Positions 2,862-28,411 of a DNA stretch of 64,000 bases are shown here, piece after piece (position 1 is the first letter of the stretch; each line of letters begins with the position of its first letter). The notes under the pieces are model-generated. The model saw only the letters and a program-made list of their open reading frames with translations. It was not told the DNA's origin and did not search any database. The DNA is taken from assembly GCA_965202585.1 (NCBI GenBank), contig OZ241833.1, positions 31,124,001-31,188,000 on the forward strand, read 5' to 3'. The stretch comes from Thalia democratica (lineage: Eukaryota). The position numbers and the translations under genes were made by a program.

Positions 2862-3770
2862 ATTAAATTGTAGAAAACTTGTATATAAACTAAATTTTAT
2901 CTAATTACTACAAATTAACTAATTATTAAATTGGTTTTAGTAAGTTAATATAGATGCGATGCGCGTTATGCTAAGTTAATTTGTTAATATTTTTCTTTAG
3001 AAGCTTAAATATTTCAGCAGAGTTTTTACTTTTAAATATTAAGCTACTTACCAAACTTTGTTGCTTATTTTTTTAAACTAAGTTAATTTAATTTTTCTGT
3101 TTATAACTAATTTGAGACAAAAGTATGATTACAGAATTGAAATAAGTAAAACCGCTAAACTTCAAAAATATTTTTTTTTACTTGTTGGAGAAGCTTTACA
3201 AATGAAAATTTAAACAATTAGTTTTTAAAAAAACAAATTAAATGACATTTTTTTACACTATAGTACACAGAAAGTAAAGTACTCTTTCAAAAAAATTTAA
3301 TAAGGTTTATTAATATGATAAGAAAGCTAATGTTATGTTTTTTGTAGAAGCTTTATAAGAACTAAAACCACTTGTTTTATAATTGAAAAGCAAGTAGTGA
3401 CTGAAAAAAGCTAAGTCTATTTCTAAAATATTACCACTACATAATGTTATTAAGGAGTTATATTTTGAGTTGCTTACTACTGTTTATAGAAAACCAACAT
3501 TTGCTGGCTAATATATTCCATTTCAGTCATTTTGCCCTTTATCTCAAAAACTCGGTTTAATTTCCTGTTTAGTATTCATAGCACACAAGATTTGTTCGAA
3601 AAAGTTGTTTAAAGAAGAATTAGATAAAATAAAAATAAAATAAAAATAGGACGATAAAAATTTTTGAAGCTCTTTGTTATCCATCGCATATAATCAGAAA
3701 GACAATTAACAATACAATCTCAAAATTTGAAAAACTTGTTAAATATGGTCCTAGTAAATGTCCTGTATAT

Positions 3771-4274
3771 TTGAGATTGCCATATCTCGGTAAAGCAGCA
3801 ACTGCTCTCGAAAAGACTGTCAAATACACTGTAAACTCCACTTTTAACTTTGTACAACTAAGAATCAGTCATGCTACAAGAAAGCCCTTAAATGGAATTT
3901 ATAAAGACCGTACTGCCGATAATGAAAAAAGCAAAATAATTTATATGTACAAATGCCACTGTGACAGTGAGTACATTGGCAGAACGTCCCAGAGATTCCA
4001 TATAAGAAGGGACCAACACGTTTTAAATTCCCTCAGAAGATGGATGGACACTGGTTCAAAAAAAACATCTAATAGATCATCAGCGATTGCTGAACACTTA
4101 TTAAACAATTTAGAATGTGCAAAGAACTATAGTGATAGTAACTTTTCAATTTTAAGTAAAGCTGGTAATGATTATCACCTAAGTGTTTTAGAATCTTTAT
4201 ATATAAAAACATGCAAACCTAATTTGTGTAAGCAACAAAACGTTTATAAATCTAATCTTTATAAGTTGTTATAG
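3771..4274 (+). pseudogene. GIY-YIG endonuclease domain of the Penelope-like element
   Basis: IIYMYKCHCDSEYIGRTSQRFHIRRDQH...SAIAEHL...NFSILSKA...LESLYIK..KPNLCKQ; no ATG start, and the upstream RT frame is broken. Confidence 0.85.
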
Positions 4275-4527: not shown

Positions 4528-6012
4528 GTGTTTTGCTTTAATAAAGATGTTTTTGAATGAATTTTGTCTTAGATTTTTGTACAACATATGTAGCACTAAA
4601 AAGTTATATACTTATCTTTAATTTATCAAACAAAACTTCAAAGTTTATAGGCTCACATTCATTTAAATTACGGTTTCCTAAAGTTGGCGATAAAAGGTGC
4701 TTATAAATCTTTTCATTTTTGCCAATTGAGCCTTAACTAAGTTTACTTTAGGAAAGCCTTTTGAAAAATAATCTGAAACATTCCGTATACTTTCATTTTT
4801 CATTATTGATCAATAACTTAATACACATAAACACATCCAACGCAATATCTATTTTAGTTTTGATAATTAAGTTCAGTTTATTTTACCAATGTATTTTTGA
4901 GTTCAAAGAACTGGTTTTTATCAGAAAATGTACCAAAAGTTTTCTAATTTTTTTCTTTATGCTTAGCTTGCTTTATATACTCTTTAAATTTTACACCATA
5001 GTTGTCTTTGTGGCGATAAGCATATTGTCACAACTGAGTTTGTTTTTAGAGCAAGACCGTTACAATATATTAAATCTAGCGGTTATAATTATTTCTTTTT
5101 ATTTGCACTAAAATTATTAAGTACAAATGCATGAATATCTAAAATAAAATAGCTAAGTAATTACAAGAACTAGGTTAACATAAGCTCTAATTATGGCAAA
5201 CTATGTAAATGTTGTTGTAAAATACTACTAATTCATAAACTTAACACTGGTCTCCCTGTTTTACTTGAAAAGTAATTAATGCTCGTTCAGTGAAATATTT
5301 AAATGAACAACAACCAATGTGGTATTTTAGTTTAAAGTCAAAGTGTTCAAGTACATACAATCTTAAAAACTGAATAAAATACTTATTTAAAGGAATTTCT
5401 ATGATTACCCCAGCGTAAAATTTTAGTTTAAAACAAACAAAATTTTATTACGCTCCATCACTCAATTGGCCTAAAAACAAACAACTGGCAAACAATTTTT
5501 CAACTAAGATTTAAACACACATAAACAGTAGAAACATATATTGATACATAAAGGTTAACTTAAAGCTTATTATGAATCAATTATACATTAATTGACTTTT
5601 AAACTAGATTTGATTACAAGTAGTTTACTTCAAAGCTAACCTTAAGATACATGGTAGAGTTTTTTAATATAAGATAGTTTACCCTATTTTTAGTGTGTAT
5701 TTGACCTTATGAGTTTAGATTTGATACCTATAAAGTTGTGGCTTATCGGCTATTTTTGTTTTCAAAACTGTAAGTGCTATATTGTTAAGCACATATGTTA
5801 TACTTGATTTAGACTTATTTAAAACATTAAGTTACAATACTGATTTTTTTATTGACCTATCTTTATATTACTTAGCTCTAGTTGTTAGCCTCCTTTTTTT
5901 AATACTTACTGGTAGTTTAAAAAAATAAAGGAAAAATAATTTTATTTAAAATATAACTTTATTTTGCAGTAAATTTATTATACAACATTTGTTGAAATAA
6001 CTAAATAAAACC

Positions 6013-7698
6013 ATGGAACCTTCAAAACGCAAGTCAAAGGAGTTTTTAAGATGTAATCCTGAATATAAAGATTTTCTCTGCGGTTACATTGACGAACAAA
6101 AAGAAAAACTTTATAAGGAAATGGAAGCAGAGAAAAAAGATTTGGCAGAAAAAGCCAATGAAAATATTTTCGAATGCGATGTTGGTTGCTTCAAAAATGA
6201 CGAACTTCAAGGATTCAAATACAAACTTGATCAGTTACAAGGCAATGATGATGACTTCAAGCTCTTGGAAAAAACAATAAACTATAAAAATATCCCGAAA
6301 CTTACCTCAATTAGTCCTAACATCACTGACGAAGAACGGCCGAAAGTATTGAAAATATACAGAGTCGTCTCAAACGACAACACTTCAGCTTCTAATCGCT
6401 CAAAAGTTCTCTTGCTCCACGGGACAAAAGCCCCTAACGTGGGAAGCATCTTGAAAACAGGGTTCAAACCGTCGGAGGGGGGAACTTACGGACCAGGAGT
6501 GTACATGACTGACAGTTTTAGTTATGCGTGTACTTACAGTAAAGGTAGTTTCGTGCAAGAAAGTGGTTTAGTGAAAAACTTCAGGTACATTTTTGTGAAT
6601 GAGGTAGAAAAAGTTGAAGGACAAGCGGCACCTGATCATTTAGAAAATGCAACTTATGAGCAGTGCCTTAAAAACTCGCCCTTCCTTAAAGTTTTTCATA
6701 ATTCTTTGACGGCTTTTCTCGGCGGAATGGTAGCAAATTTAGAAGATACTTTTTGTGATGTTTTTGACAGCAAAGACAGAAAAGTTTCACAAGTCACTTT
6801 TGGAAAAGACTTTGCTACCCAAAGAGTTGTATTGGCTCACCACAGCTTAGTTGTCCCGGCGTACTTAATTGAAATTGAAGAAAAATTCAATTTTAAAAGT
6901 CTTATCGATCAAGTTGTTTATTTGAATTTTGGTCTAAAAACAAACCAGAAAAATAGCACAAACCAAATTAGCTTGATTAAAGATTCAGACCTTACTTTAG
7001 AAGCATTTAAAACGGCTTTAAAACAGGAAATAAACGCCAGACTTCAGGAAAAACTAAGTATACAATTGTATGCCAAAATCGAAACAATGATAGATCAACT
7101 TTCGATTGATTTCAATCTTCTTGTTACAACAGAACACCACCGAAGTTTGAAATACCAACCGGAACTTTTGAATGAAAATGGTGCGGATTATGATTTTGTA
7201 ATGCGCGCAGTCGGGGAGAAATCAGATCGAAAAGTATTGTACGTGTTCAAACTAAACTCTGCGGAAAAAAGCGAATCGGCCGAGCTGAGCGGTGAGTATC
7301 TCTTCTTTAAAAGAACCAGCTCCGACAAAATCATCGGCGTTCTTACTCACGGATACTATAGAAGCTTGAGCGATATTATTCACAAGTTTCTCAACGCGCC
7401 AACTTCACTTGCACACGACGATGGGTATACCGCAACCACGTGTTTGGAAAAAGAAATTTCTAAAGGGTCGAGTTATCACGGTGGAGCTGATAAGACTGTG
7501 AAGAAAATATCCTGCGTGTTTCTCGTCAGTTCCGGGCGCGCGCGAGAAAACCCGTTCTTAGATGCGGAAGAGGTGACGGACACTAGAGGGAGTCGTGTTG
7601 ACGTCCATTTAATCGGAAGTGACGAGCACAATTGGGAGAAGCCGTGCAAGGTTCCGGCATACCTGGTCGTGTTCGAGTTGAACGAACGAGACCGCTGA
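6013..7698 (+). CDS. Intronless 561-aa protein with two tandem PARP/ART-fold domains (first has H-Y, second degenerate)
   Basis: LLLHGT (H136), GFKPSEGGTYGPGVYMTDS (Y164) and PAYLIEIE are PARP catalytic-domain motifs. A second repeat reads LFFKRT...GVLTHGY...PAYLVVFEL. Confidence 0.88.
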   Translation: MEPSKRKSKEFLRCNPEYKDFLCGYIDEQKEKLYKEMEAEKKDLAEKANENIFECDVGCFKNDELQGFKYKLDQLQGNDDDFKLLEKTINYKNIPKLTSISPNITDEERPKVLKIYRVVSNDNTSASNRSKVLLLHGTKAPNVGSILKTGFKPSEGGTYGPGVYMTDSFSYACTYSKGSFVQESGLVKNFRYIFVNEVEKVEGQAAPDHLENATYEQCLKNSPFLKVFHNSLTAFLGGMVANLEDTFCDVFDSKDRKVSQVTFGKDFATQRVVLAHHSLVVPAYLIEIEEKFNFKSLIDQVVYLNFGLKTNQKNSTNQISLIKDSDLTLEAFKTALKQEINARLQEKLSIQLYAKIETMIDQLSIDFNLLVTTEHHRSLKYQPELLNENGADYDFVMRAVGEKSDRKVLYVFKLNSAEKSESAELSGEYLFFKRTSSDKIIGVLTHGYYRSLSDIIHKFLNAPTSLAHDDGYTATTCLEKEISKGSSYHGGADKTVKKISCVFLVSSGRARENPFLDAEEVTDTRGSRVDVHLIGSDEHNWEKPCKVPAYLVVFELNERDR

Positions 7699-8876
7699 TG
7701 GTGGCACCAACGTCCCGGACAAGACGTCAAAAGGTATCCGAGCGGTGTACAACTGAATAATCGAAAGGTTCTCTCATGCACCAGGTTTTAAGAATAAACT
7801 ATTTGAGCGTTTTTTTTTTGTCGTTCAATAAACATATAGTTATCAAATTAAACTATGCCATTGGTAGTTTTTTTTTTTATTTTTAAGTAGGGTTTTAAAC
7901 ACCATATCTATTGTTTTTTTTGTTTTACTCGAAAAGTAAGGTTAGTCTGTTCAGTGAAATACTTGAATGAACAACAACCATAGTGGTACTAAAGTTTTAA
8001 ATCAAAGTGTTAATGTAAGTATGCACAGTCTTTAAGCACGTTACTTGAAATATGAAAATATATGTATAATTTCTATTTGTTTGATAAGTAAGAAAATAGT
8101 AGGAATAGTTGATATTCTGTAAAAATATTTTATTGACAGAAACAATATAATTTCACAAAGATGTAAAAATAAATATAAAACCTGAAGAGTTATGACTTAG
8201 CTTAACATTTTTATTTATTATGAGATTATCAAATCCTTAGTCGTTTTTATATTGGAATTTGAACTGTTAAATAATGAATAAAATTTTTATATATAAATAA
8301 CAGTTTTAAAAGAATAAAAAGTTGTAAAGAAAGTAATAATAACGACTTAATAATTTTTTCAAATATAAAATTCATTATTAGATGTAAAGTATGTACTTCA
8401 ATGAGATTAAATAACCGTGTAAATAAAAGTGTTGTGTTTCAATAAAAATATGTTGTACATTGAATGTAAAAACAAATAAAAATCAGTATGCATATATTAA
8501 GCACTAAAAATATTAAAATTACAATGAATGTTATAAAGCATGCTTGCTTGTAACACATCAGTGATAAAAAGTAACTTTTTCACGTAGAAAACTTTTTATA
8601 CGAAATTTAAGTAAGAGGTCTATAAACTTTTTTCAGTCTATTGTAAAGTACTTTTTTGAACAAATTATAAAATATAAATTTTTTTACATTGAAGAGCAAA
8701 ACATTATAAGAAGACTTAAAAAAAAAACGTTGCATGAAATTACTTTGAATAAATATTAAATAACTTGGAACGTCACCGAAATAATAACTTTTCAAACGAA
8801 AACAATTTGCGTGACCCTGCGATCTAAAACCCTGTGTGTGATGACGTCATGTAACGATGGTATGTGTCGTCACATA

Positions 8877-8957
8877 TCACTTGTTGAAAGTTCCGAGGAC
8901 GATTGAGCCGATCACTATCAGCAATACGAAGCAGCAGACGATTATGCAGATTTTCTT
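8877..8957 (-). CDS. STX1: Paralog B terminal TM exon 10e (canonical STX1-type, with Cys-Cys)
   Basis: ttccattcaacag|[26 protein letters not shown]; phase 0. Confidence 0.88.
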   Translation of the reverse strand, partial: KKICIIVCCFVLLIVIGSIVLGTFNK

Positions 8958-11900
8958 CTGTTGAATGGAATAAAAAACTGTTAAAAAATTCAAAGTAAAA
9001 TGATCATGTTCTAAGCTAGGTACAAACCTTTTTTAAAAGTATTTTGTTTTATGGTTACATTTAGTTAAAATAAAAAGTTTGATTCGATACTTTTACAGTT
9101 GTTGAGTTCTGATTGGTTATCCTTTATAAAGACAGTATTAGGTCTGTCGATTTAATCTAAAAAAATAAATAAATAAGTTTAAACAAAAATTTGGAGAAAG
9201 ATTAAGAAGTATGACGCTCGAGAAACCCTTTTTACAGCTTTGATCAGTTTTGATAAGTTTCCCAAAACTAATCTTACGAAAAGTTAAGCCTAGTATTTGG
9301 TTATGATAATCTTTAATTATCTTAAAGTAGAACTAACCTTTTCGTTAAATTTTATCTAATTGAGCAAAACTTTTCATGTATTTATTTTGTTCAAACACTC
9401 AGAAGTTGTATTGAGGCGTACTAAATAAAGCTTAACTAATTTTACAGACGCCTAGTGTAAAGCGTTGTTTATTGGCTTGAAAATAGTGGTTAATGTAGAA
9501 AAAAACATAATTTAGTATCTTCAAAAAGCATTAAAAAAAATTGTATTTTATAATTTTTTATTACCAAAACATTTTATTGATATTTTGGACTAGTGAAAAA
9601 AAATATCAAACTGTTAGCTTTTTCACTTTATTTGTATTATTTTTTAATACGGAGTTACCATAAGTACATGTTTTATAAGAATATTTTCGCAGAGGAACTT
9701 AATCTTGTTTATCAAGTGTACTTAGTTGTCTACCGGACATGAACTTTTCGGCCAAGATCCGACTGAGTCTTTGACAGATTAAAAGAGCAAGTGTTTTTTT
9801 CCTTATTTGGAAACTTTTGCACTAGATTTCGTAATGAGTAATATTTAACATACCTTTAAAATAACCTTATATTTGTTATACAAGAATTTTAGCCTTTCAG
9901 CTCAATTCATGAACCTTTAATAAAATACTTGCACCAGGTTTCAAACACATCTAACTTTTAGTCTTATCTAAACCCACCTTAGCTTAATAATTTTTTCAGT
10001 TTAATTCCTTAACCTTTAAACAAAACATTTAAATTCCTTAACATTTAAAAAGCTTAAAACTTTTACTTTAAACTTTGATGTTAAATAATAGTTAGGTATG
10101 TAAGAAAAAAAGTTGGCAAGTTGAAATGCAAAAAAGCTTCTATTTTTGATTACATTTTATTGTAACTCCACTCAGAATAAATTAGTACATGTTTCTAAAA
10201 GTTAAAAGAAATAACTGATTATCCTTAAAAGTCAACAAATAGTTTCGCGTTAGAATTTTTTTACCAAATGTCTTATTTCTGGGAAAGATTTTCCTGGCTT
10301 TTTATTAAAAAAATTTGTACTAGATTGTTTTTACAAATAAAATCTTGCAATAAATTTATAAGTTTGGAAAATTTAGAACTTGCTCCAAAATTTATTCAGC
10401 AACTTTTACTTTGTTCTATCTATCTACTATTGAGTTTATTAATCTGAAACATTAGTAGTCTTTTCTAAAAAAAGCTTTATTCTTGTAGCTAAAAAAAATC
10501 AATTGATGAAGTTGTTTCTTAATTTTTAAACTAATTCTTAAGTATCTTTTCTTATAACAAAATTTAGTGTCTAGCTTTTTTATTAAAATCAGACCGGCTC
10601 TTAATTTGAAAAAAAATGCAAACCTTTTTTTTATGGATTGCTATTTTAAAGAAGATGCTTGTCATACAAACCTATGGAATTAAAGTTAACTGCCTTACAT
10701 TAAGTATTTACTTAAAAAAAAATCATTTTAATAAGTTTCAACTTTTAAATTAATTAAGTTAAGCAGTCACAGCTATTTTTCGCATACTTATCAAAAAATT
10801 AAATTTTAAAATGCATTAAACCAGCGGTTCTTAACCTGTTTTACTCCGTTTTGAAAAATAGTTACCAAACTTATCCCCAATATACAAAGTAGTGTTTAAT
10901 TTTGAGGAAAAAACTATATTATTTATTATTTTGAGGAACTTGTTGTTTAAAAATTATAAAAAAATGTATAATTCAAAGAGTTTATTTAATTTAAAAACAA
11001 TCACAGTCAAATGTTAACTTGTAATTTTAAACGACAACTAATAAACATTAATTTACATAACTTTACTAATGAAAATTTGGCCTCTAAAACAAGGTAATTT
11101 AACCCCAGGTTAAGAACCGCTGCATTAAACTATTAGTCAGTACATAAATGTATCTATGTGATCAGAACTAGTTCACAAACAGTTGAACAGAAGTTAAACT
11201 GTTTAACAACAAAATCATTTCAAGTATAAAAAGTTATATCAATAAATTTTCATGTTTGTTAATTTTCTATTTACTTGGACTTAACAAATTTAATAAAACA
11301 TGCACTGTGAATACTTAGCATACAACTTACAGCCTTATAATTTTAACACTTACACATTTAGATTTTAATTCTTAAATATTTACTAAAGATTTTTATAATA
11401 ACTCAATTTCAGATGAATCAAAAAATCAAGCAGTATATCTGTTTAAAAAATATAGCACATAAATTTTAACTATAAACTATATTAACTTAATATCATTAAA
11501 TACGCTTTTTAAATTTAAAAGCTCAAATTTATTAAATAAATTTTTGGAAAAAACATTGCAGCCGAAAATGAAAAAAATAAAAAAAGTCAATGTTTTTACT
11601 GCTTGCAATTTAAATACAAATTATTTTTAGAAAATTTTTATTTGAATAAATTAAAAAGATTGCTAAAGGACAGAACTAATAAATAAAGGACGAGTTATTG
11701 CAGTTTTATATTTTAAAGTAATAAATATACAAGAGAAAAAGGACATTTTAATAGTATAATAAAACAGTAATTAAAAAATAGTTGGCCGAAAAGCAGTAAA
11801 AATGCATAATTTTAATAAAATGTTAAAAAAATATGAAAAAGCTTAGTGTAGTAATTTAAAGCAGTGGTCTTCCATTTTTTTCAAATATGTATACATTAAA

Positions 11901-14900
11901 TTACTTGAAAATGAATTTTGCAAAAACTAGACTATGAAAAACAAAATTTGTTCTGAAAAAACACTACTTGTTTATTTGAATGTATTAGTAAAACAATAAC
12001 GTGTTAAGAATTTTATTTTAATTAGATTTTTCCAATAGAAAAGGATAAAATCAACATCAATTGAAAAAAATATTTTTTAATCTCGGTAAATTTTCTGTGC
12101 ACACAAAACAATTTTTATGCACACCGTTAAGACCACTGACTTTAAACATTTAAAACACACTTAAATGAAACCGTTACAACAATACACTATTACGACATTT
12201 AAAATAGGCTTTTTCTCAATTAAATAAGCCAAATTAATTTATCCAAACTTAAAGTCATGTGAAAACGAGTACTATCAAGGTGAAACAAAATAAAAATGAC
12301 TAGTAAGAGTTGGAAAAGTTGGGATTTAAAAAAATAAATAGAATAAGAAGTGTGAAAAGAAATTGTTATTGAAGAAATGTATCGAGATTCAAAGAGGTAT
12401 AAAAGAGTACGCTCAACAATTTATTTTCAGCAACCTTCATGAAAAAGTTTAAATAAACATTTCGCCCAATGAGACCAGGCAATGGTGTGAACTGCATATA
12501 TTTTCTTGATTGTGGGAACTCACCGGTTTTCAGTATGACGTCATCAAACCTGATTTCTGTGCACGTTTGTAAAAAAGTTTAATGACAATTTTAAAAACAC
12601 CCATGACCCGACAGGTAGTTTAAATTTTTTTATATATACTTGCGCAAACTGCATTTATTGACCTTTGGTTACTTTTTGAAATCGTATAAAATAGTTACAA
12701 CTTAATTGAAACAGAAGGAATGAATGATAATCAGTGAATTTTCAAACATTAACTGAAACTATGTATTAAAAAAACCTTTTAACAATCATAATAGAGTAAA
12801 CTAATGTTAATTTACTAACTAAATTAGATCTAAGTAAAAAAAAAAAAAAACACTTTTCTATTTGTTTATACAGGATACTTTTTTGTCTTTTTTCAAATTT
12901 CAATCATCTTCATGTTTTTCCGTGACTACCTCGACTTCTACTGTTTCTTCTAAAATCATTAAAAATTCTCATTAAAAAGTTATACAGTCAAAAATGTTTA
13001 GTACTCAAAAAACAAGTTATTGTTTAGATGTAAAGAAAACAAACTGAATTCTTATTTGTAAATAATATACATAAACATACGCATTGAAACTTTAACTTCT
13101 ATAGTTCCAACAAAAGGGTGCTGAACTTGTTTTAATAATAAAGGTGCTGATTAAAAAAAAAAACATTAATAAAACTGTACAACCTGTAACAAAACACTGT
13201 CTTTTACTAACTGTAATTTAACTGACAATACAAAATTAATCTAAACTGTCATTATATTACCAATTAAAATAAATTCTCATAAGGTAACAAATGAAACAAA
13301 AACTGACTTTCGTAGTAAAACTTGAAAGTCAACCAGATGACAACTCCCAGTATTGCCAGCACCAACACTATACAGCAGCAAAACCTCGCCTGAAATCAAA
13401 GTAAATTGCTGCACTACTTGAGAACTAATAATAACATACAACTAAAAACAAATAAATAAAAAAACGCTGACCTCTCGAATTTTTTTTAAAAGATATATCT
13501 TAAATAAGTGTAAACTTGATCTAAACTGTCTAAATAAACTTTTTTTTTGTAAAAATGAAACCAACTTCATATTCAAAGACTGCCTCAGAAACTTACAACT
13601 ATTTCACAAAAGATAAACATTTGAGTATAATATACTAGTCATTAGACAAAGTCAAGCCATGGGAGTAGACACAGGAGTCATCGGACAACTTACAAACCTA
13701 TTATGACGTAATTAGTCCACTGTCTTTTATTGAAGTTGCGTCACAACAATGGCGACGATCACTCCCAACACCGCCAAGACTATCAGCGCCAATATTATCT
13801 TTTTCTGTAAATTTCACAGATTTTAAACAATACTTTTATTTATTTTCATAGTATTACTCCATGCAATAGAAATCAGTGACTATTTGTAATTCGTTATTAT
13901 TTTCTATGTTAATATTTTCATCAATCACGTTTGTAAGACTACCAAGCTTTGTCATCTTTTTAGTTGGAGCCAAAGATTTTGTTGTTGTATTACATGCAGT
14001 AAAATTAATTTGTATTAACTGTTAGCACTTGTGGTTATTTATATTTCATTGATTAGCTGGATATTTGTATTAAAACGTTAGCATCCAGGCAAATTTGTTC
14101 TTAGAAGCAGATATGAACCTAAATAAGTATTTTTGAAAAAAAAACTTTATTTAGAAGAAAATCAGGCGTGTTTATCAGCTTTTTAAACTTGGATGTCAAA
14201 CGTTTTCTCTTGTGGAAATAATCAAAACTGTTCTTAATTAAACTGGCTTATATTAAAAAAAGACTAAAATCTCAACTATCATTATTTAAAAAAATATAAG
14301 TGAATAATGTTTGATTTATGCTAAAAGTATCGTTTCTATTAAAATTCATTGATTGTTTAGTTAAAGTTTTTTCATAAAGTCAGGTCATGGAATCACCCAA
14401 GTAACTACCAGATTTATTTTTCTTACCTGTTCTGACGTCATAGTTACGTCACCTGCGTCACGATGATGATGATAATTATGACTAGGACGACCAGAACTAT
14501 CCCTCCCAATATTAACTTTTTCTGTAGAAGTCAGCGCTTTTGTAAACTAATATCATTTAAAGTAAGGGTATGGGGGGAAACTATGTTATGTTTTTACAAA
14601 AACAAAATATGTAAAATAATATTATTTAAAGTTTAAGTTATTGTTTCAATTAATTCATTTAGACTTAAATCAAAGCTACCAGATGCTTAATAATGACAAA
14701 GAAATTTAAAAATAAACTTTTTAAGTTGTTAATTTCATGTTTAAAATGTACCAGAGACTTAGCTTGAACGAATGTGCAGTTTTTCAAATTCCTTATAATA
14801 GTTTTATTTATCAGGACATTGCTTTCAGTTTTATAAAAACTAAACTAATTTAGGCAAAAAATGAACCAAAAGTACTACCTTAAGGAAACTGAAGAGCTAC

Positions 14901-17900
14901 AGATTAATTCAAGGTAGCCACAAAAAAGGTAAATGTAAAAACTTTTTATTCTGTTAAATAAACAAATTGTGCCTAATATTAGGAAAATGTCAAACTTACA
15001 CAACTTAACTTTTTTTAATTATTTAAAGTACTTTTGTCAACTTGTTCTTTTTAGTTAAATTTAGTTAATATTCAAAAGAAACTATCTCAATATAAACTTA
15101 TTGTAAAATTATTAGTTCGTTTATTGAGTACTTAAATAGTTTCTGCAAAACTTTGTAACCTCTTTTTTAGAAAACAATTATTTTTTAATGATATTAATAC
15201 ATGCTTTAAGCTAATTAGCATCCAACTTGTAAATTCTATGTAAAGCATAAGCTTTGTTAGCTTTTAAACAAAATAACTGGTTATTTCAGCAAAATAAGTT
15301 TCATTATAAAGTTTAACTTAAATAAATTTTTAATTTTGTTAACACGTAGAGTAATCTTGTTTGCAAAATTAAAAATAATCTTTTAATTTTTAACATTAAA
15401 TAACAGCATGTGGATAGATTGTTAAACGTATGCTTATAAAATCAGTAAGCTTTTAATATTTTTAAAGCAGTCCATCCCCATACCCGTAGTAAAGCAATAA
15501 GCAAAAGCAGTAAACATATATTTATTTTTTCCTTAAATAATCACACCAACCGACTTGCTTGATTTTTTTAAACACTACGTAATGATGAGCCTGGTAAAAC
15601 TGAAAAACTTTCAACGTATTTCTTAAACTGAAAACTCTTATAAAATCGTTTGAAATGTTATTATTCATACTCATTATTTTTAAAAATCTACTCACATCTA
15701 AGAGGTGCATAAAAACTTTCTTTTTCTCAACTGGGAATTGCTATCAAAATCTAAAATTATTACAAACGAATAAAACCTGTCAACCCTTCATTCGAAAAAA
15801 TTTCTCAGAGTAAACTATTAAACCGAAAATGATCGTCAGAGCAAATTGTAGGTAGAAATATTCAATCATAGAAATAACGACAACAACAATACAAAAATCT
15901 ACCACCGTTGATAGTAGAAATTTATTCTTTCAAGAATTTATTTTACAAATCAAGTTTCGGTCAAAGACCTCCGGTAGTTGAGATCTCTCTATTTGTTTTC
16001 TTAAAACCAAAACATATAATACCGTTTATAGTATAATAAATGAAGAATTCAAAATGAAAGTGGAGCAAAGATATTTGCAAAATTGTGTAATTCTGCGTAA
16101 AATAAATTACAAACCATAAAGAAGACCTACTTAACAAAGTAGAAAAAAGTAAACTGAAAAGACGTTGAACAAACACAGATGGAAGTTTAAATAAAAATAA
16201 AACAACATACAAGTGAAAAATAGGAAAACGAAAATCTTGAACAGCTTTAATGCAATGATTCTTACAAGTATTGTGCAACATATTTCTTACAAAATACAAA
16301 ATGAAACACAGATAAGTGGAACATGCAGCAGTTTGTGAACATAAAAAACTACAATACATAAACATGAATGATTTACAACAGTTAGTAAAATATAGTGTTA
16401 CAGTTACTAAGTCGTACACACATTACAAAAAATCAAGTCGACAAGTAAGACAATGACGTGAAAGCGTAACAACATTATGACATCACAACGGCACACTATG
16501 ACGTCATAACAACCGACCCTTCTCGCCTTGCTCTGGTACTTGACGGCCTTCTTGGTGTCCGACACCGCTCGCTCCACGTAGTCCACCGAGTGCTCCACGT
16601 TGTACTCGATCCTGTCGATTATCTCCCCCTGGAAAGACCCGTATAAAAATTAATATGAGGGCATTCGAGCATGTTGTTCAAAGTTGGCCATGCGTGTTCA
16701 CTGTTCAGTGTTAATGCAAAGGTTTTGCGCCCGCGCACGCGTTGCCTTTGCTTTAGATTTTTTACCAGACATCTTCAACTGATAGATGTTTAAAACTAAG
16801 AGACAATTTAACGCATCAACTGGCATAGGATTTCGTGCGAACGCTTTTAATTTTTAAAGGTTCTTACAAGTCTTTTCAATAATATCGAAAACTAGTGATA
16901 TAATATTTAACTCATACACCCCACAGACTCTTTTTAATTTTAAATCTAGCTTATCTTGACTTAACATACTATTATAATATGTTACGTTTGAGGCCGTTTG
17001 TTCTAAGCGTGTTGTTTTGAAAAAGCATGGTCAAAACAAAGTTACCAATCCTATTATGTATACATGAATTTAATAAGTTTTAATTTGTAGCTTTCAAGGA
17101 CTTTTTGATTTTTCCTAAATTCAAATCTAAAGGAACTTTGAAATTAACTTTGAAAGCTAAGTACTTTTTGAGGTTGAAATTAACCTAAATGTCTATGGAA
17201 GTAAAACTCTTATTAAAATCCTTATTATTAAAATTCTTATTAAAAGAAAGCAACAAAACCTTCCATAGAAGCGTTTCTGATAAATGATTCTTCAAACTTA
17301 GTTTACATTAAATGTTAATTAAAAAATCATAACTAGCTAACATTTTATAATGTTAAAAAGCCTTCTGTATTAATAACCTTTTAAAAATGCTAAAGATTTT
17401 AAACAAAAATCTTTGTTTTTATTAACACTTCTTTATTATAATACCATTTCTAAATACTCAACTTTAAATTTATGACTTTTAAAAAATAAAATTTAAAAGC
17501 ATATACTTTTGTAAGGTTTATGACATCATAAAACGACTAGCTTTGTGGAACTACGTTTTCTTTGAATACAATTATCTACACTTAAAGACTCTTTATGTTA
17601 GCAATGTAGCTGTAGTACAACCGTGCCAAAACTTAAAATTAAGAGCATCACGTAACAATATCTAGTATATTCCCTATTTTCAGGATAACCACTCTACACA
17701 CTTAACAGGGTCTTAACTTGGTCTATTCTGACTGCTTTTTATCCTGTTAAACCTATCAACTTTTTACCAACTTTTACCAGTGGACATGACAGTTTATGCT
17801 GACAAATCAAGCAAACGGGTCGGGGTGTTGTAATTTGTTACCCTTCTAGCTGAAGATTGGTAGTGAACGGCCTTCTTGGTCTCCTCCTTGGCCTGCTCAA

Positions 17901-20900
17901 CGTAATCGCCGGCGTTCGCCACGTTGTACTCTATCTGGTTCACTATTTCACCCTGCGAACATTTATTTGCGTTTTAGTTATTACTTTTATTTAAATATTT
18001 AAATTTATTAAAAAAATAATACAAAATTTATTATTTAATTAGACTACTTAGTTTGTTTCTAGAATGAAGTATTGAAGTTTTATTTTTTTTAAGTTAAAAA
18101 CGTACTGTAACATCATTTACTTTTTGAAATTAGTTTGTGTTTATAGTTTAATAATTTAAGTTTCATTTAATTAAGTTAAATTTGTACTGTAGCATCATTT
18201 ATTTGTTAAAATTAGTTTGTTATAATTTTATCAAACTTTTTATTTGTTTTGAAACATTTGGGAGTTTTTATGCATAAAATAAGTTTAAAATTATTCACTT
18301 GTTAAATTTAACTTTAAAGTTCTGTTTATTTTTAAAAAATTTAAAGTTTTCAAATAAAAGTTTTATTTAAGTTTGATTTTATAAGTTTATTATAATCTAA
18401 TTATAAAAATTTCTATTTATGATTTTTATAAAACTTTATTTAAGCATGTATATCTGCATTTTGCTCGAAAAATATTAAAACTCTTCGAAATATTTTTTTT
18501 ATAATTTTCGATCAATGTACTTATTTAGTATATATTTATAAAAAATATAAAAACTAAACTATTCATTAATACAAAACAAACAATTTACAACAAACTAATT
18601 ATTTATTGAAAAACACTTAATAAATAAACTAAATTCAAAACAATCTTTATTACAAACGAGACTAAACATATTTGTTTTTTGTTATGAAAATAAAAATGAA
18701 AAGCTTAAATTGAAAGTTACTCTAGAAGTTATGATAAAAGTACAACAAAAATTTCGAAAATTCACCTTTACTTTTTTATTAGAAGCAACTTAAATATTTT
18801 AAACGTGCATTTACAAGTTAACATTTACCAATCATTTTTTACATACAAAAATTTTAAAAAACATGCAAACAATTAGGATCTTACAATTCAAAATACAAGC
18901 ATCACAGTACACTTATGAATAAAACAGTAGATAAGTTCTTCTGATAATCCTATTTAAAAAAAATTTACTCGAAATCCGATTTGGCTGTCATGCTGCCGTA
19001 AAAGGCTTTTCTGCGAAAAAGGAGTTGAAATAAAAATTCGACAGAAGGTGAAATGAAGCGGCTGTTTTTATTACCGTAGGAATAAAAACAAGAACGAGTT
19101 GCTTCAAAAAGCAGAGGGATATAAAGTGATGTTGAGTTTTGAAGGCGTATGAGGTTTATTTGAAAAAAGTTATTCTGTTGCTTTCGAAAATTTATTAAAA
19201 TAAATAATATATTCAAGTATTTAAGGTTCTAAAGTTGTGAAATGTTTCTGTATTGTCTCATAAAATTAATTTTTAGTGTTAAAGTGTGCTAAAATTTTGA
19301 TGCTTGTTAAGTTTGAGGCATTGCTTTGAAATGTAGTAGTTTATACATTTTTCAAAACAATACTAAACCTCTTACAGAAATGTTCAATCAATAACATGCT
19401 TATACAAAACATACAAATGCAACTACGTGCTTAATGACATATTTACTACAATGTAATGAAACTTTAACATCGGTGTACTTTTTTAAAATCAATCTACATA
19501 ACGACACGTTAACAACACTGTAACGACATTTTTACAACAGTTGCTTACCTTGTTTAAAACAGCATATATTTCTTAAGTCTCTTTCGTCCAGAGAAATTTG
19601 CAAAATGTAACATTTATTAAAATTTTAGCAAAACTGTCTACCAAACTTAAAGTATTTTCCAGAATAATTAAAACAGTAGGCACTCTGAGGTAAGCTAATC
19701 TATCAAGTTTTTATTTTTCTTTAAAATCAAGATCATTATAAATCAATTTCGGTCAATAGTGAAAAAATATTTTTAAAAGTTGAATGCTTTTACAAGTGCT
19801 TTTTACACCTCAAACACTTTTCAGCTTAAAGTATGAGATGCTTCTTGAAATATTTAAACTTTTTTTCAAATGTTATTTCACAAAACTCAAGTTTTCCGTA
19901 ATAAATAATTAAAAATAGTTTACTAATGTTAGAATTTCTAAATTCTAAATCCTTAAAAACTATATAATATAAAGTAATGAATAGCTAAATAGCAAGTACA
20001 TCATAAAATTTAGTTAGTAAAGACGTATATTAATAATGCCATTAATGTTAAAAAAAAATGACATATATTTTTAAGTAATATATAATAAAACTCAAGTAAA
20101 AATAAGTCTTATTAAAATACTTAAAATTTGGCTTCTTTATTTCATCATTTTAACATATTCAGATTCAAAAAAATTAAAACACAAGCTTGTTTAAAACTTA
20201 TCACAAACAAAAACTAACTTGCTGCTCGACCATCATGGCCATGTCCATGAACATGTCGTGAAGTTCCCGTATCGAAGTTTCGAGCTTCATTATGTCGTTG
20301 TGCCTGGCCTCGATGTCGTTCAGCGCTTGCTTCGTCTGGACCGTGTCCATTATTATCTGTTAGTTTCTTAACATTTTCATCAAATAGATGTCAAGATGTT
20401 TTGGGTAACAAAATAATAAGGCTGCAAAAGGTTAAAGTAATAGTAAAGTTAAGCATAATTCTTCAAAGTAAACATATACTTTAGCTGATAAAAACAGGTT
20501 GTAAATATTCTCAACGAAAATGTTCAATAGGACATCATAAATACCTTTAAGCTGATAAACTCATTTATTTTCCTATATGTATTATTGAAACTAAAGAGTA
20601 AATCAAGTGTATATTTTTTACACAGAGTTGTTGAATTGATGGTATACTCACAATTCCCACTCAATTTTGTTATTTTTTTGTTACTATAGTTATTTTGTAA
20701 TGGGTAAATATATTTAATTAAGAAACCCACATTCGTGGCCGGTTACAATTTTTTAAATAATTTTTCCATCACTGTTACCCCTAACCCTTAGTCGGTATGC
20801 GGTTCTTGGATTTGATCGGGTGGGAATTGAGCGCGGTTTGGAACTGAGCGGTTCCCTGAAATGGTAAACACTGGACTGACAAATGAATCATAGTAACAAT

Positions 20901-23900
20901 ATCTTAAAACTTCATAAATTACATAAAGTAAATTTAAATTTTGTTAGTTTTTTATTTAAAAAGCAGGTTTTATGAATTTAAATTAATTAAAAATCGCAGA
21001 GGTCAAAGGATAAAATTCTAGTTAAAATAAAGTCATAACATCGGCCCAACCGGTGCTTCGCAAAAACACCATCACTAATTTCAAGCATATTTTTAGTTCA
21101 ATTAAATCTCCCACACCGGTGTATATAGCAGGACTTCCATCACTATTTTCCAACATATTTTTAACTTAATACAGAGAAATACTAACCCCTCCAGTAAATA
21201 TAGCAGGACTTCCATCACTATTTTCCAACATATTTTCCAACTGTTGGTCGTCAACTTGTTTTCCTGTTATTTCCAGTTGACGCTGTATGCGCGCTTTGCA
21301 TCGGTCTCTGAAGTTTTATTAAGTATTTAATGATTATGTTGCAAATATTTATATAATTCAAAAATAAACAAAACTTTGCAGTGCTGTTTTTGCTCATTAA
21401 AAAGTCAAGTAATATTACTATAACATTGTACTGTATAAAAGATTACATTAAAAAATTATATGTGTATGTTCGGAATCAAAGAAATCGTTGGCGAAAGTAT
21501 ACATAGCATAAGCCTGGACTTAAGTATGCCTTGAGACAAGCTCAAGTTTAACTCAAGGTTTGATCACACCAATTAAATCATCAGACCACAAGCCCTTCGG
21601 TAGACTGAAACTCGGGTTTCGTTCTTATTGAAACTCGTCAGTCAGCCGCAACGTTGCACGGCGAAAGACAATGCTGACGTCACTGATCGATACCAGCAAA
21701 CGGTTGCTTCATGTCATGATAAGAAGTTTATAGATCGGTTGTGACTAACTGATGAGTCCTAATAAGAACAAAACTCAGGTTTCGGTCTACCGAAGGGCTT
21801 GTGGTCTGATGATCGAAGTGGTGTAATCAAACCTTAAGGTAAACTTGAGCTTGTCTCACGGCATACCAAAGTACAGGCTTAGGCTCTGTAGACTTTCGCC
21901 GATGCTTTCATTAAGAAGAAACAAGTTTCAATTAACATTTTTTTCCATAAAGTACTTATAACAAAATAAAAAAATATCGAAAAATATTTCTTTGATTTTT
22001 TTTTCTTTTGAAAAACAGTAAACCTTAACAGTTCTTTTAGGAACTCTAATTGAAAACTATTTAATGTGAAAAACTCTTTGAATGTATTACTCTAAAAACA
22101 TATTCAAAAAACTATGGAACTTAGAAAATCAAACAATACAAACACAACCGTATTCACTGAAATAAAGTTTATGTATAAAATACCTGTAGTCGTTTTGTGT
22201 TGTGTTGTATTCCGTCATTACTGCTATAAATTTCCTTGATAATGTTGAATGCTGAAAGCGTAAAATATCTGTATTAGACAATCTCTATAAAACTATGAAA
22301 ATTTTACAGCTTGAAATATGTTATGTGATTAAAATTTAAGTTACCACAACAAATAATTAAAATTAAAAAATGTATACATATTGAAATTAATGGTATAAAA
22401 ATAAAAATAAACAGTCCAATTGAAAGATGTACAGGCTTAATTAACTTTTCTTTAAGCTGTTGCTCATTTGTTTGTATTAAAGATATTCAGAAGAAGAAAA
22501 GGTTAGGTACTATTATTTTTTGGTATCCTCACAATTCCCATCCGCATAATTCCCACTCGATTTTTAAAATAATTTTTCTCATCCATACAAATACTTCTTA
22601 TTTTTTTTGGTTATTACTTATTCATTTTTAACTATCCCTGTCATCCTTAACCTTGCACTCGGTCGGTAAGCGGTTGTCAGGTTTGATCGTGTGGGAATTG
22701 TGCGGGTGGGAGCTGAGCGGTATTTACAATCTCAAAGACTTAACATTAAAGAATACATCAGTCATTCAGTATTCAACATACTTTTCTCATTACCTGCGTT
22801 TTTTGGATTCTGAGATCAGCGGGCTTGGTGTTGGCGGAGTTTTCCTCGATGTTCTTGTCGATCAGCCGCAACTTTCTCCTCACCTTGTTGGCGTTCGACT
22901 TGATGTCCGCCATGCACTGCTCCATCTCCTCTTTCGTTTCTGTTTAGGGGATTTTATTTTTTGATTTGTCAAACAAGTTTTTTAATTAATAGTAGACTTA
23001 TATGTATAAGTAAGAAATACTATTCTATACTGCTGATTTACCAAAGTAAAGAGCTAATTGCGTGAGACGGAAAAACAAATTTGCAATTCTGCAAGGGAGA
23101 TTTTATTTGCGCTTGTTGTTGGATACACATTTATGATGTTATTTATTAAGTTTTCTATCAATGAAATTTACACTTTATGAGAAACGAATTGCAACTTCTG
23201 CATAACTTCTGTTTTTATAACAGCCTAAACAGTAAGTTGTCGAGGGCTTAAAAGCTATGTAAAAACTTTTAAAGTTTTAATTTGATTTTAAACTGCATGT
23301 ATATGGGGGATTTAATTTTGATCACCTTGTTATAACAATTCAATACTTGATACTTATTTATCAATTAAACTTATATGAAAGTCAAGTTTTAGATTTCTGC
23401 ACACTTGTACATTAATTGCAGTCTAAATAGCTAACTTTTGATTGTGTAGAAATCAGTTTAATAAACTGTCCAAGTCTCACTATAGTCTTGGATTATATAT
23501 TTATGTATATTAAAATACTATTGTAAGTTTTATGATCTTAGGATCTAAATTGAGTTTTCTTTACTCAAGTGCTTTAATCAAAAAATAAGATAGCCAATAG
23601 CTATAAATTGTACTAAAATTAAAAGTACATCAAAAGCTGAGCTTTAGTACTAGTATGATGAGACTTTAAATTTATACAACTTGTTTATACAAATTAATAA
23701 TAATATATCATTTTTGTGAACTTTTTTCTTTCATTGATTTTTGAATAAATTAAAATGCTTTTTCACTTAGTAGAAATTAAAAAAACACAATACAGCAGTG
23801 CCCGTAATACCTTACATGCCAAGTTAAATTCTATGTCACATTGAACCTTTTTGTATACAAAAATATTAAAAAATTTCAAAAATATTGATTCTATCTTTAC

Positions 23901-26900: not shown

Positions 26901-28411
26901 TGAACAGACATGCTTACACAACTAGTAGAAATAGTTCAATCGACAGTAAAAGTAATGAATTTATAAAACTATTTTTAATATTATTATCTATCAGTTTAAA
27001 AATGTTTTATAAAACATAATATAACGGGAAGTTATGTCATGTAGTTAACTATAACAAACTTGAATTCATCCTAAATTGCTACTGTACAAAACATAACTGC
27101 AAGTCTTTAAAATTAGGTTCAAATTTTGATTTCAGGTTAAGTCAATTAATTAGTTGATTTCGGGATAACTCGATTTTCTCCATACTAATATGAACTAATC
27201 ACAAGTACATCTAATTTAAACTCAAAACGAATTGGCGTGATGTCACAACAGCCAACTGAATACTGCTATGACGTCACAACTAGGACGACTACCAGGTCGT
27301 AGGAGGATAAAATGTACGAAAAAGTAAAGCAAGCGCTATGACGTCACAATAAAAATGTAAGGAGTAAAATATCAAACTAACTGTCATCAGCCTGAGGGGC
27401 CGACAGAATATCGGAATGTTGCTTTTTCACATCCTGGACTTTTTGCTGGATGATGTCTATGTACCCCCGTATCTCTTCAACCTGGTGAAATAATTTTGAA
27501 AGTATAAATGCGTTAAATGAAAGATGAGGTGGAAAAACCGGAATTACGTACACATTACGGTGTTTGAAAAATTACAAAAAGTTGTATAAAAACATCTTAA
27601 AAGTATCTAATTTTTTACCTGGTGAATTATTTTTATTATCAGTTGTGAAAAAGCACTATACTTTAACCTAACTGCTTTTATAATTTTATCAGCTTTCAAT
27701 AAAAAGTTCTTACTTGCACGAAGAACTCCTTCAGCGTGTCCTGCTCGTCTTCGATTGAATTCTCTTCGTTCTCGTCGTCAGATTCGACCTGAACGTGGGC
27801 CATCCCCTAAAATGAAAGTAATAACAAGTTAATAATAGCGATTAAATAAAAAAGTCAAATGCAAATGCAAAGTAATATAGGTATGTGTGATAGGAAAAAG
27901 CAACGACAAAATTTAATATCAATAATACAGTGTGATTCTATACTGTTTGCTGTTAAATGTTGTAATAAAAGATTGCTTGTGATAAAAATACCCGCAAAAA
28001 ATAAGGGGCTAATGTAAACTTTATGTGTGTCATTTCAAAAAAAAATTACTATCAAAAAATAGTTACAAGTCTTTTCCTATTTTAATTTCAAAGAAAACTT
28101 CAGTTTCGAAAAATGTAACTTATTTCACATGATGCACTTTGATGCTACAAAAATAATAAATTTTGGTTAAAAAGTTACAATTGTAAAAAACACCTCAAAT
28201 AAAGTATCAATTAATGTTTTAATGTTCAAAGGTGAACACAGATTTCTATTAAACTGTTAATTGAAACTAAGATATTGACTTCTACAAAAAAAAAACTTAC
28301 TTAAAGTATTAACTAAAGCATTTGAAAGGCTGAATTAAAAGTATTTTTCTAATGAGTTAAAAAAAGAAATTAAAAACTTACACTTTTGAGATCTGCTAGT
28401 CTGTCCCTCAT
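8877..28411 (-). CDS. STX1: Syntaxin-1-like Qa-SNARE, paralog B (multi-exon, alternatively spliced C-terminus; ~295 aa)
   Basis: Exons 28411-28382, 27806-27714, 27481-27382, 22939-22794, 22251-22184, 21307-21187, 20356-20219, then 17952-17842 or 16628-16518, then one terminal exon. All are GT-AG with consistent phases: [10 protein letters not shown]...EFFVQVEEIRG...HSTLSRKF...[20 protein letters not shown]...KARRKK-TM. Confidence 0.93.
10822..11122. mobile_element. hAT-type MITE
   Basis: 17-bp TIR CAGCGGTTCTTAACCTG / CAGGTTAAGAACCGCTG; perfect 8-bp TSD cattaaac. Confidence 0.9.
11862..12138. mobile_element. Degenerate hAT-type MITE
   Basis: 10-bp TIR CAGTGGTCTT / AAGACCACTG; flanks atttaaag / actttaaa only partly match. 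Confidence 0.55.
12530..12556 (-). CDS. Candidate TM-less terminal exon 10d of paralog B
   Basis: acgtgcacag|KSGLMTSY* in phase 0, followed 6 nt after the stop by a strong donor ccg|gtgagt. Confidence 0.45.
   Translation of the reverse strand, partial: KSGLMTSY
12900..12949 (-). CDS. Candidate luminal/extracellular tail exon 10c' of paralog B
   Basis: tgattttag|AA GAA ACA...; joined to the phase-1 donor of exon 10c it reads [16 protein letters not shown]. Read in phase 0 it gives KKQ*. Confidence 0.55.
13308..13389 (-). CDS. Paralog B alternative TM exon 10c (Cys-Cys-Cys)
   Basis: ctttgatttcag|[27 protein letters not shown]+A|gtcagt. If unspliced it continues [14 protein letters not shown]. 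Confidence 0.72.
13727..13804 (-). CDS. Paralog B alternative TM exon 10b
   Basis: aaatttacag|[25 protein letters not shown]; 78 nt, phase 0. Confidence 0.85.
   Translation of the reverse strand, partial: KKIILALIVLAVLGVIVAIVVTQLQ
14444..14521 (-). CDS. Paralog B alternative TM exon 10a
   Basis: cttctacag|[25 protein letters not shown]; 78 nt; donor cag|gtaag 17 nt after the stop. Confidence 0.85.
   Translation of the reverse strand, partial: KKLILGGIVLVVLVIIIIIIVTQVT
16518..16628 (-). CDS. STX1: Paralog B SNARE C-half exon 9b (STX1-type)
   Basis: tctttccag|[37 protein letters not shown]|gtcggt; 111 nt, nearly identical to vertebrate STX1A/B. Confidence 0.93.
17842..17952 (-). CDS. Paralog B SNARE C-half exon 9a (divergent duplicate of 9b)
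   Basis: tgttcgcag|[37 protein letters not shown]|gtaaca; 111 nt, same phases as 9b. Confidence 0.9.
20219..20356 (-). CDS. STX1: Paralog B exon encoding the SNARE motif N-half
   Basis: [46 protein letters not shown]; 138 nt, cag/gttagt. Confidence 0.93.
20641..20858. repeat. Short interspersed repeat with internal inverted repeats (copy 1; copy 2 at 22522-22725)
   Basis: ggtatactcacaattcccac...ccctaaccct...ggatttgatcgggtgggaattgagcgcgg...ctgagcgg; possibly Helentron/HINE-like, class not established. Confidence 0.6.
21040..21165 (-). repeat. Two intronic partial copies of the 3' end of exon 21187-21307
   Basis: AATATGTTGGAAAATAGTGATGGAAGTCCTGCTATA repeated 75 nt downstream, with a more decayed copy a further ~68 nt on. 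Confidence 0.8.
21187..21307 (-). CDS. STX1: Paralog B exon (end of Hc helix plus linker)
   Basis: (R)[40 protein letters not shown]; 121 nt. Confidence 0.9.
21603..21647 (-). ncRNA. Minimal type I hammerhead ribozyme motif (GUU site)
   Basis: GGCTGA-CTGACGA-GTTTCAATAAGAAC-GAAA-C-CCGA-GTT-TCAGTC; intact core and 6-bp helix I. Confidence 0.65.
21743..21787 (+). ncRNA. Mutated hammerhead motif (GAAA to AAAA)
   Basis: GACTAA-CTGATGA-GTCCTAATAAGAAC-AAAA-C-TCAG-GTT-TCGGTC. Confidence 0.45.
22184..22251 (-). CDS. STX1: Paralog B exon (start of Hc helix)
   Basis: gctttcag|[22 protein letters not shown]+AG|gtattt; 68 nt. Confidence 0.9.
22522..22725. repeat. Short interspersed repeat, copy 2 (family of 20641-20858)
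   Basis: ggtatcctcacaattccc...ccttaacctt...gtttgatcgtgtgggaattgtgcggg...ctgagcgg. Confidence 0.6.
22794..22939 (-). CDS. STX1: Paralog B exon 4 (Hb helix)
   Basis: (K)[48 protein letters not shown]; 146 nt. Confidence 0.92.
27382..27481 (-). CDS. STX1: Paralog B exon 3 (Ha helix)
   Basis: [33 protein letters not shown]; 100 nt, phase 0/1. Confidence 0.92.
27714..27806 (-). CDS. STX1: Paralog B exon 2
   Basis: [31 protein letters not shown]; tag/gtaag. Confidence 0.88.
28382..28411 (-). CDS. STX1: Paralog B first coding exon (SM-protein-binding N-peptide)
   Basis: ATG AGG GAC AGA CTA GCA GAT CTC AAA AGT|gtaagt = [10 protein letters not shown]; upstream acceptor ttccag at 28446. Confidence 0.88.

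Follow-up and report, generated by a model that had tools for sequence, protein, structure and literature searches.

A syntaxin gene of Thalia democratica probably ends in one of two coupled modules of SNARE half and membrane anchor

The vertebrate syntaxin gene STX3 gives rise to isoform 3A from exons 9A, 10A and 11A, to isoform 3B from exons 9B, 10B and 11B, and to a soluble form, 3S, in which exon 9A is joined directly to 11A (PMC8263458, PMC11476516). In its module A the transmembrane (TM) exon precedes a separate 3′ exon, and skipping of the TM exon yields the soluble form (PMC8263458, PMC11476516). The unc-64 gene of C. elegans uses alternative anchors (UNC-64A and UNC-64B) in neuronal and non-neuronal products, under the control of CELF/UNC-75 (PMC4946901). 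In SNAP-25, which belongs to the same fusion complex, an equal-sized duplicated exon (5a/5b) swaps part of the SNARE (PMC2581893). Here we analysed a stretch of 64,000 nucleotides (nt) of Thalia democratica (contig OZ241833.1 of assembly GCA_965202585.1, positions 31,124,001 to 31,188,000 of the forward strand), hereafter the window, in whose coordinates all positions are given. It holds two tandem syntaxin genes, both on the minus strand. Paralog A (about 53.2 kb to 33.9 kb) is divergent and has one exon 9 and one TM exon; the alternative C-terminal exons belong to paralog B (about 28.4 kb to 8.7 kb). We consider it quite likely that paralog B consists of constitutive exons 1-8 followed by one of two alternative C-terminal modules, which are interleaved on the DNA.

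We looked for transcripts of paralog B among assembled messenger RNA (mRNA) contigs and proteins of Joint Genome Institute (JGI) marine metatranscriptomes, which sample whole plankton. RNA runs with near-identical sequence were marine metatranscriptomes only; the share of words of positions 8200-9000 that was present reached 17% in run X5 and 9% in run X1. Full-length proteins were found by a homology search restricted to exon 8; a search of representative sequences with exon 8 gave mostly genomic fragments running into the intron, along with P0002, from an mRNA of paralog A. The 90% identity cluster of one protein, P0154, comprises all forms carrying the N terminus of paralog B, and its ten encoding contigs (L003-L012) were aligned to the window with refinement at GT-AG splice sites. 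Over the constitutive exons, identity to the window is 98% for L003 and L004, and about 91% and about 86% for two further lineages.

The features listed in the initial annotation of this DNA, namely exon 8, two 111-nt phase-0 exons 9 and TM open reading frames (ORFs) with their acceptors, are indeed present on the minus strand. Exon 8 in that numbering (20219-20356, with a GTTAGT donor) encodes the constitutive N-terminal half of the SNARE motif and ends with MVEQQ at the zero layer. Downstream lie two alternative exons for the C-terminal half, 9a (17842-17952; contigs L003, L004, L006-L008 and L010-L012) and the syntaxin-1-like 9b (16518-16628; L005 and L009), which are duplicates with 76 of 111 nt identical. 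They are followed by the TM exons 10a (14427-14521; L003, L007, L008 and L010-L012), 10b (13698-13804; L004 and L006) and, at the distal end, 10e (8686-8957, including a 3′ UTR with an approximate end; L005 and L009). Five junctions, all GT-AG, matched to the base: 20219 to 17952, 20219 to 16628, 17842 to 14521, 17842 to 13804, and 16518 to 8957. Spliced mRNA alignment thus bore out these predicted joins. We saw three isoforms, 9a-10a-11, 9a-10b-11 and 9b-10e (exon 11 is non-coding), so that two exons 9 and three exons 10, rather than one of each, are used in mRNA. In all ten contigs, from three related lineages, 9a stands with 10a or 10b and 9b with 10e. The proteins of the cluster comprise 9a+10a (P0366, P0367, P0373 and P0374), 9a+10b (P0370 and P0371) and 9b+10e (P0154 and P0369), and none of its members contains both exons 9 or neither.

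These isoforms might be artefacts: either the assemblies are chimeric, or the mixed plankton samples contain transcripts of distinct paralogous genes. The samples do contain several related species, and one protein, P0158, is a clear assembly chimera that joins the N terminus of paralog B to the C terminus of paralog A, with the crossover in a 77-nt stretch of exon 8 identical in the two genes. The exon 9-exon 10 junctions, however, share only about 6 nt between variants, which is too short for a k-mer chimera to produce the isoform joins. Moreover, all alternative exons lie in one locus in the required order, every junction falls on GT-AG sites, and the same arrangement is found in the genomic DNA of Clavelina and amphioxus, with RefSeq isoforms to match. 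Contigs from one sample show 0 differences in 720 nt (L003 versus L004) and 1 in 731 nt (L007 versus L009) through exons 1-8, indicating that the isoforms come from one gene by alternative splicing. An artefactual origin is thus very improbable.

Exons 10a and 10b had been predicted to be terminal. We found that they are internal cassettes instead: each holds a stop codon, then about 20-30 nt of untranslated region (UTR; 17 nt in 10a), then a donor (GTAAGA in 10a), and both are spliced to the exon beginning at 12556 (junctions 14427 to 12556 and 13698 to 12556, seen in L003/L004, with the 10b join in L004). This exon, which we call exon 11 (11527-12556, the 3′ end approximate), had been listed as '10d', a TM-less C terminus; it turned out to be a 3′ UTR exon shared by 10a and 10b, with a proximal poly(A) region. 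The 3′ UTR of L010 aligns through it to about 11527, adjoining AATAAA-like signals. Joined straight to 9a, which needs the skipping of 10a and 10b, exon 11 would encode KSGLMTSY followed by a stop. No mRNA skipping both was found among the contigs examined, and the KSGLMTSY tail is not kept in L010.

TM-like ORFs start immediately after AG acceptors at 14521, 13804, 13389 and 8957. A scan of 12 kb for an AG, a short lead or basic pair, a run of 18 or more hydrophobic residues and then a stop returned these four and, also on the sense strand, one weak match at 13196; the opposite strand of these 12 kb gave no match, so the array exceeds chance in AT-rich sequence. In 10a, 10b and 10e a basic juxtamembrane stretch (ARR/KK, the slash marking the exon junction) is followed by 21-23 hydrophobic residues and a stop. 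Thus, of the four TM exons originally proposed, 10a, 10b and 10e were recovered in mRNA, but the fourth, 10c (13259-13389), a Cys-rich TM-like ORF with a good acceptor, is a candidate from sequence only. Neither the contigs, nor the P0154 cluster, nor a search with the N-terminal 186 residues gave a 10c transcript, and no homologue appeared among about 400 collected syntaxins. Exon 10c begins with AR (ARR/AR), whereas the collected anchors nearly all begin with KK, KM or KL. Its TM part has 48% G+C and its tail and flanks 23-26%, a base composition that looks exon-like; possible donors for the spliced acidic tail that had been proposed after 10c lie at 13307 (GTCAGT) and 13258 (GTAATA).

The arrangement suggests how the gene would be read. 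The constitutive part would end at the zero-layer glutamine (MVEQQ/GE), and the rest of the protein would come from one of the two modules. In module A, 9a would be followed by either 10a or 10b, which are Cys-free, stop-containing and mutually exclusive, and then by exon 11, which is non-coding and would supply a proximal poly(A) site. In module B, the syntaxin-1-like 9b would be spliced to the distal terminal exon 10e with its Cys-rich anchor; in the 9b-10e form, a single intron of 7.6 kb is spliced out, and 10a, 10b, 10c, exon 11 and the proximal poly(A) region all lie within it. An mRNA with both 10a and 10b would have a stop more than 55 nt ahead of the last junction and is predicted to be a target of nonsense-mediated decay, which would account for the apparent exclusivity of the two cassettes. 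Double inclusion of 9a and 9b stays in frame, so that regulation would have to prevent it. If STX3A/3B and UNC-64A/B are a guide, neurons and regulated secretion probably rely on module B, and general exocytosis on module A; the exon 9 used and the 3′ end would then both be set by cell-type RNA-binding proteins (CELF/ELAV-like).

We compared the gene with the RefSeq/Gnomon isoform sets of Clavelina (X1/X2), Ciona (X1-X4), Styela (X1-X3) and Branchiostoma (X1-X8), all of which are automatic annotation. Like the window gene, these invertebrate chordate sets show two exon-9 types, and Cys-free versus Cys-rich anchors. RefSeq isoforms pair 9a with Cys-free and 9b with Cys-rich anchors in Clavelina (X1/X2), Ciona intestinalis (X1-X4) and Styela (X1/X2); in Ciona, 9b is also joined to a second Cys-rich anchor. 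The interleaved order recurs in genomic DNA of Clavelina: 9a, a 94-nt intron, 9b, a Cys-free TM exon in which the stop is followed by a GTAAGT donor, and a distal Cys-rich TM exon, that is, one TM-A and one TM-B exon. Compared with the other invertebrate chordates, the window lineage carries one tandem duplicate more (10a/10b), together with candidate exon 10c. In the amphioxus syntaxin gene exon 9 is present as two neighbouring copies, and there are five TM exons, of which the last is syntaxin-1-like; this gene differs from the window gene in that both exon 9 copies are syntaxin-1-like and are annotated as freely combined, and free mixing may occur there. The two-module design is thus found in tunicates with the interleaved order and in amphioxus in a simpler form. 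We came across no paper that describes the arrangement in tunicates or in amphioxus, but public automatic annotation contains it.

In a Branchiostoma lanceolatum sequence (L014, CM068847.1, 47129-54336) the exon 9 copies are about 55 nt apart and the TM exons lie at 47772, 47984, 48631, 49519 and 54262; the annotated amphioxus protein P0395 wrongly contains both exon 9 copies. Arthropod syntaxin-1A genes, in insect and crustacean RefSeq isoforms, carry a second, divergent exon 9 (for example, one starting GELVDRIEHHV), and in the mispredicted proteins P0140 and P0143 two copies of exon 9 follow one another. Judging from the isoform lists of echinoderms, hemichordates and insects, the design may extend beyond chordates.

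To assess selection on the cassettes, we counted synonymous and non-synonymous differences (proportions pS and pN) of the window exons against the three lineages. Exon 9a showed 7-14 synonymous and 0 non-synonymous differences, and the 9b protein is identical across lineages with 11 synonymous changes. For 10a, pN was at most 0.055 with pS up to 0.45, and for 10e pN was 0.017 with pS of 0.32-0.64. These values indicate that 9a, 9b, 10a and 10e are under strong purifying selection, whereas 10b appears less constrained (pN 0.04-0.07, pS 0.05-0.25; pN/pS about 0.3-0.75 on few sites). The weaker constraint on 10b bears on the possibility that only two products, 9a+10a and 9b+10e, are functional, and that 10b and 10c are decaying duplicates, spliced as noise or unused. 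Consistent with such decay, the stop of 10b in the window comes 4-5 codons earlier than in its relatives, 10c lacks the near-universal KK/KM start and has an AT-rich read-through tail in addition to having neither transcript nor homologue, and Clavelina makes do with a single TM-A and a single TM-B exon. Yet 10b occurs in full-length mRNAs of two lineages, correctly joined to exon 11 and with its TM segment intact, as it also is in the window; the exon-like G+C content of the 10c TM part stands within an intron of 25% G+C; and the second Cys-rich anchor of Ciona shows that tunicates do use extra anchors. We therefore think a gene with just two functional products unlikely.

The sequences of 9a vary at synonymous sites also within samples: 9a joined to 10a differs from 9a joined to 10b by 5-6 synonymous changes (L003 versus L004, and L007 versus L006). 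This divergence could reflect mixed populations or old alleles.

The initial annotation held that any exon 9 may join any TM exon, 10c included, giving eight or more isoforms and a whole plasma-membrane syntaxin repertoire from one locus. That several C termini come from one gene stands; free mixing is not supported in this lineage, in which we found only three forms. Among the ten contigs there were 0 cases of 9b with 10a or 10b, or of 9a with 10e, RefSeq lists no such cross-forms for Clavelina, C. intestinalis or Styela, and a search of 5.8 billion clusters with the N-terminal 186 residues returned no other C terminus on paralog B except the chimera P0158. In addition, '10d' is a UTR exon and 10c is without a transcript, which shortens the list of partners. 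In favour of free combination, all cassettes are in phase 0, so every pairing stays in frame, and rare isoforms are under-reported by contig assemblies. We regard free combinatorial splicing as improbable, though somewhat less so than a gene limited to two functional products.

Several points nevertheless weigh against two strictly coupled modules, the first two of them favouring free combination as well. Amphioxus RefSeq lists all 2×4 combinations of exon 9 and TM exon (X1-X8), and a Ciona savignyi model, P0407 (Ensembl-derived), which is the only cross-form among the ascidian sequences, joins 9b to a Cys-free anchor. Assembled contigs show dominant paths only, and minor cross-combinations may escape them. 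The tissue specificity and the regulators proposed above are drawn wholly from analogy. A search of 8600-20300 for inverted repeats that might act as docking and selector sites in Dscam-like RNA pairing gave AT-rich low-complexity pairs only. Finally, L003 and L004 probably come from a sister population rather than from the sequenced animal, because 9a is 93% identical (7-8 synonymous differences from the window) and the adjoining exons are 98-100% identical. On balance, the exons are real and functional, the modular design is old, and the dominant pattern in tunicates is that of two coupled modules.

We next consider how paralog B relates to the vertebrate syntaxins. Its N-terminal 186 residues are closest, among named proteins, to those of the tunicates Clavelina (76%), Styela (71%) and Ciona (67%), and the best named matches are tunicate 'syntaxin-1A-like' proteins, followed by amphioxus, lamprey and insect syntaxin-1A. 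Precomputed Pfam assignments place Syntaxin PF00804 (Habc) and SNARE PF05739 on P0154, P0156, P0157 and contigs L003-L012. Judged by its sequence, paralog B encodes a plasma-membrane Qa-SNARE of tunicates that corresponds to vertebrate syntaxin 1/2/3. The 9b half is identical to vertebrate STX1 at 36 of 37 residues. Exon 9a evolves fast among tunicates (25-28 of 37 identical) and shares 24 residues with a hagfish non-neuronal-type syntaxin and with a vertebrate-like contig, versus 18-19 otherwise. Against the STX1A C terminus in the PDB, 9b+10e scored 96.5 bits and 9a+10a 51.5 bits; the PDB matches were all syntaxin-1A, the set being without STX2/3/4 C termini. A homology search with 9a+10a gave 2 matches among 32 candidates, and an 'STX2/3A-like' reading rests on the hagfish protein, one contig and small differences in identity; it is thus suggestive only that the divergent module A (9a with 10a or 10b) is slightly closer to non-neuronal vertebrate syntaxins. 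The sole match in JGI metagenomes to 9a, compared as a 59-residue open frame, is L002 (MDSQ01095482.1, 1590-1712), a vertebrate-type exon 9, and the record is presumably animal genomic DNA within a metagenome.

The closest parallel is vertebrate STX3 (3A/3B/3C/3S). As in the tunicate gene, exons 1-8 are shared, the SNARE C-half is swapped together with the anchor, and the B module is the more syntaxin-1-like. The counterparts in the tunicate gene are 9a, 10a or 10b, and 11 on one side and 9b with 10e on the other; this likeness is one of exon content. The initial annotation called C-terminal variation in vertebrates limited, which understates STX3, whose 3A/3B/3S layout matches. Paralog B therefore adds no new kind of mechanism, the STX3-type design being already known. 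It differs from STX3 in being a single counterpart of STX1/2/3 rather than an orthologue of STX3 alone, and in having two expressed TM cassettes, perhaps three, in module A; an 11B-type exon and a soluble form were not seen among its mRNA contigs. The unc-64 gene (UNC-64A/B/C) and mammalian STX2 resemble the tunicate gene in using alternative 3′ exons for different hydrophobic anchors, but they keep the SNARE motif, whereas the tunicate gene couples the choice of anchor to an exchange of SNARE layers +1 to +8. SNAP-25 5a/5b, in contrast, concerns another gene and a single exon pair, and leaves the anchor and the 3′ end unchanged.

The constitutive exons of paralog B upstream of exon 8 were placed by alignment of complementary DNA (cDNA) contigs. 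Exon 1, with the 5′ UTR and the start of the protein (28382-28435), comes from spliced alignment of L003/L004 and has a GT donor. Exon 2 (27714-27806; GT-AG), exon 3 (27382-27481), where Habc starts, exon 4 (22794-22939) and exon 5 (22184-22251) were found both by cDNA alignment and by tblastn, the latter with P0154 for exon 2. Exon 6 (21187-21307), the linker exon, was found by cDNA alignment. All are on the minus strand. The next intron contains copies of the 3′ end of this linker exon, one in paralog B (39 nt at 21161-21123, 100% identical to the cDNA) and three in paralog A (at 36508, 36432 and 36360; region 36322-36508). These intronic copies are possible alternative donors or microexons. 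Exon 8 of the two paralogs contains 77 nt that are perfectly identical (20226-20302 versus 35624-35700), with 86% identity over the whole exon, and the stretch resembles a product of gene conversion.

The palindromic octamer TGACGTCA occurs 11 times in the window (8842, 12536, 14433, 16499, 21675, 27269, 27339, 33001, 37417, 44136 and 47615) versus 0.32 expected, and none of 100 shuffles reached 11. In 10a and 10e it lies just past the stop; further copies are found where exon 11 starts and 12 nt past the 9b donor, and 10b carries a copy with one mismatch. The 3′ UTR copies are kept in the cDNAs of all three lineages, in which synonymous sites have diverged by 30-60%; the Clavelina locus has none. 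The octamer is a candidate RNA motif, a candidate DNA site similar to a cyclic AMP response element, or a candidate trace of exon duplication. We rejected pairing of its copies as a bridge from the 9b donor to 10e, because the partner copies lie inside the downstream exons, away from acceptors, and the motif is absent in Clavelina.

The window as a whole is AT-rich (about 27% G+C), and the introns are about 75% A+T. Outside the syntaxin genes, on the plus strand, an intronless ORF of 565 codons at 6001-7695 encodes a PARP/ART-like H-Y motif region, and part of this ORF is present a second time at 3-602. Between the copies, a GIY-YIG-like ORF at 3639-4271 (plus strand) is suggestive of a Penelope-type element.

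The corrected gene model comprises three mRNA-backed C-terminal isoforms, an internal pair of stop-containing TM exons with the UTR exon that they share, and a terminal exon of syntaxin-1-like type at the distal end. Among the annotated invertebrate chordates compared, the 10a/10b duplication and the 10c candidate are particular to the window lineage. The swap of half a SNARE helix together with an anchor is not confined to vertebrate STX3 but is a chordate-wide design, and the finding bears on the origin of the neuronal syntaxin 1 genes. It is possible, though we put it forward tentatively, that the two-module C terminus is the ancestral state of the STX1/2/3 family, with a syntaxin-1-like half and a Cys-rich anchor alternating with a divergent half and a Cys-free anchor. 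If so, after the vertebrate genome duplications STX1A/B would have fixed module B and STX2 module A, and STX3 would have retained both. If the pairing of exon 9 and anchor has persisted for over 500 million years, then SNARE layers +1 to +8 and the linker would be co-adapted with the TM segment. The conserved pairing can serve as a natural experiment to ask whether the composition of the anchor and the membrane-proximal layers act as a unit.

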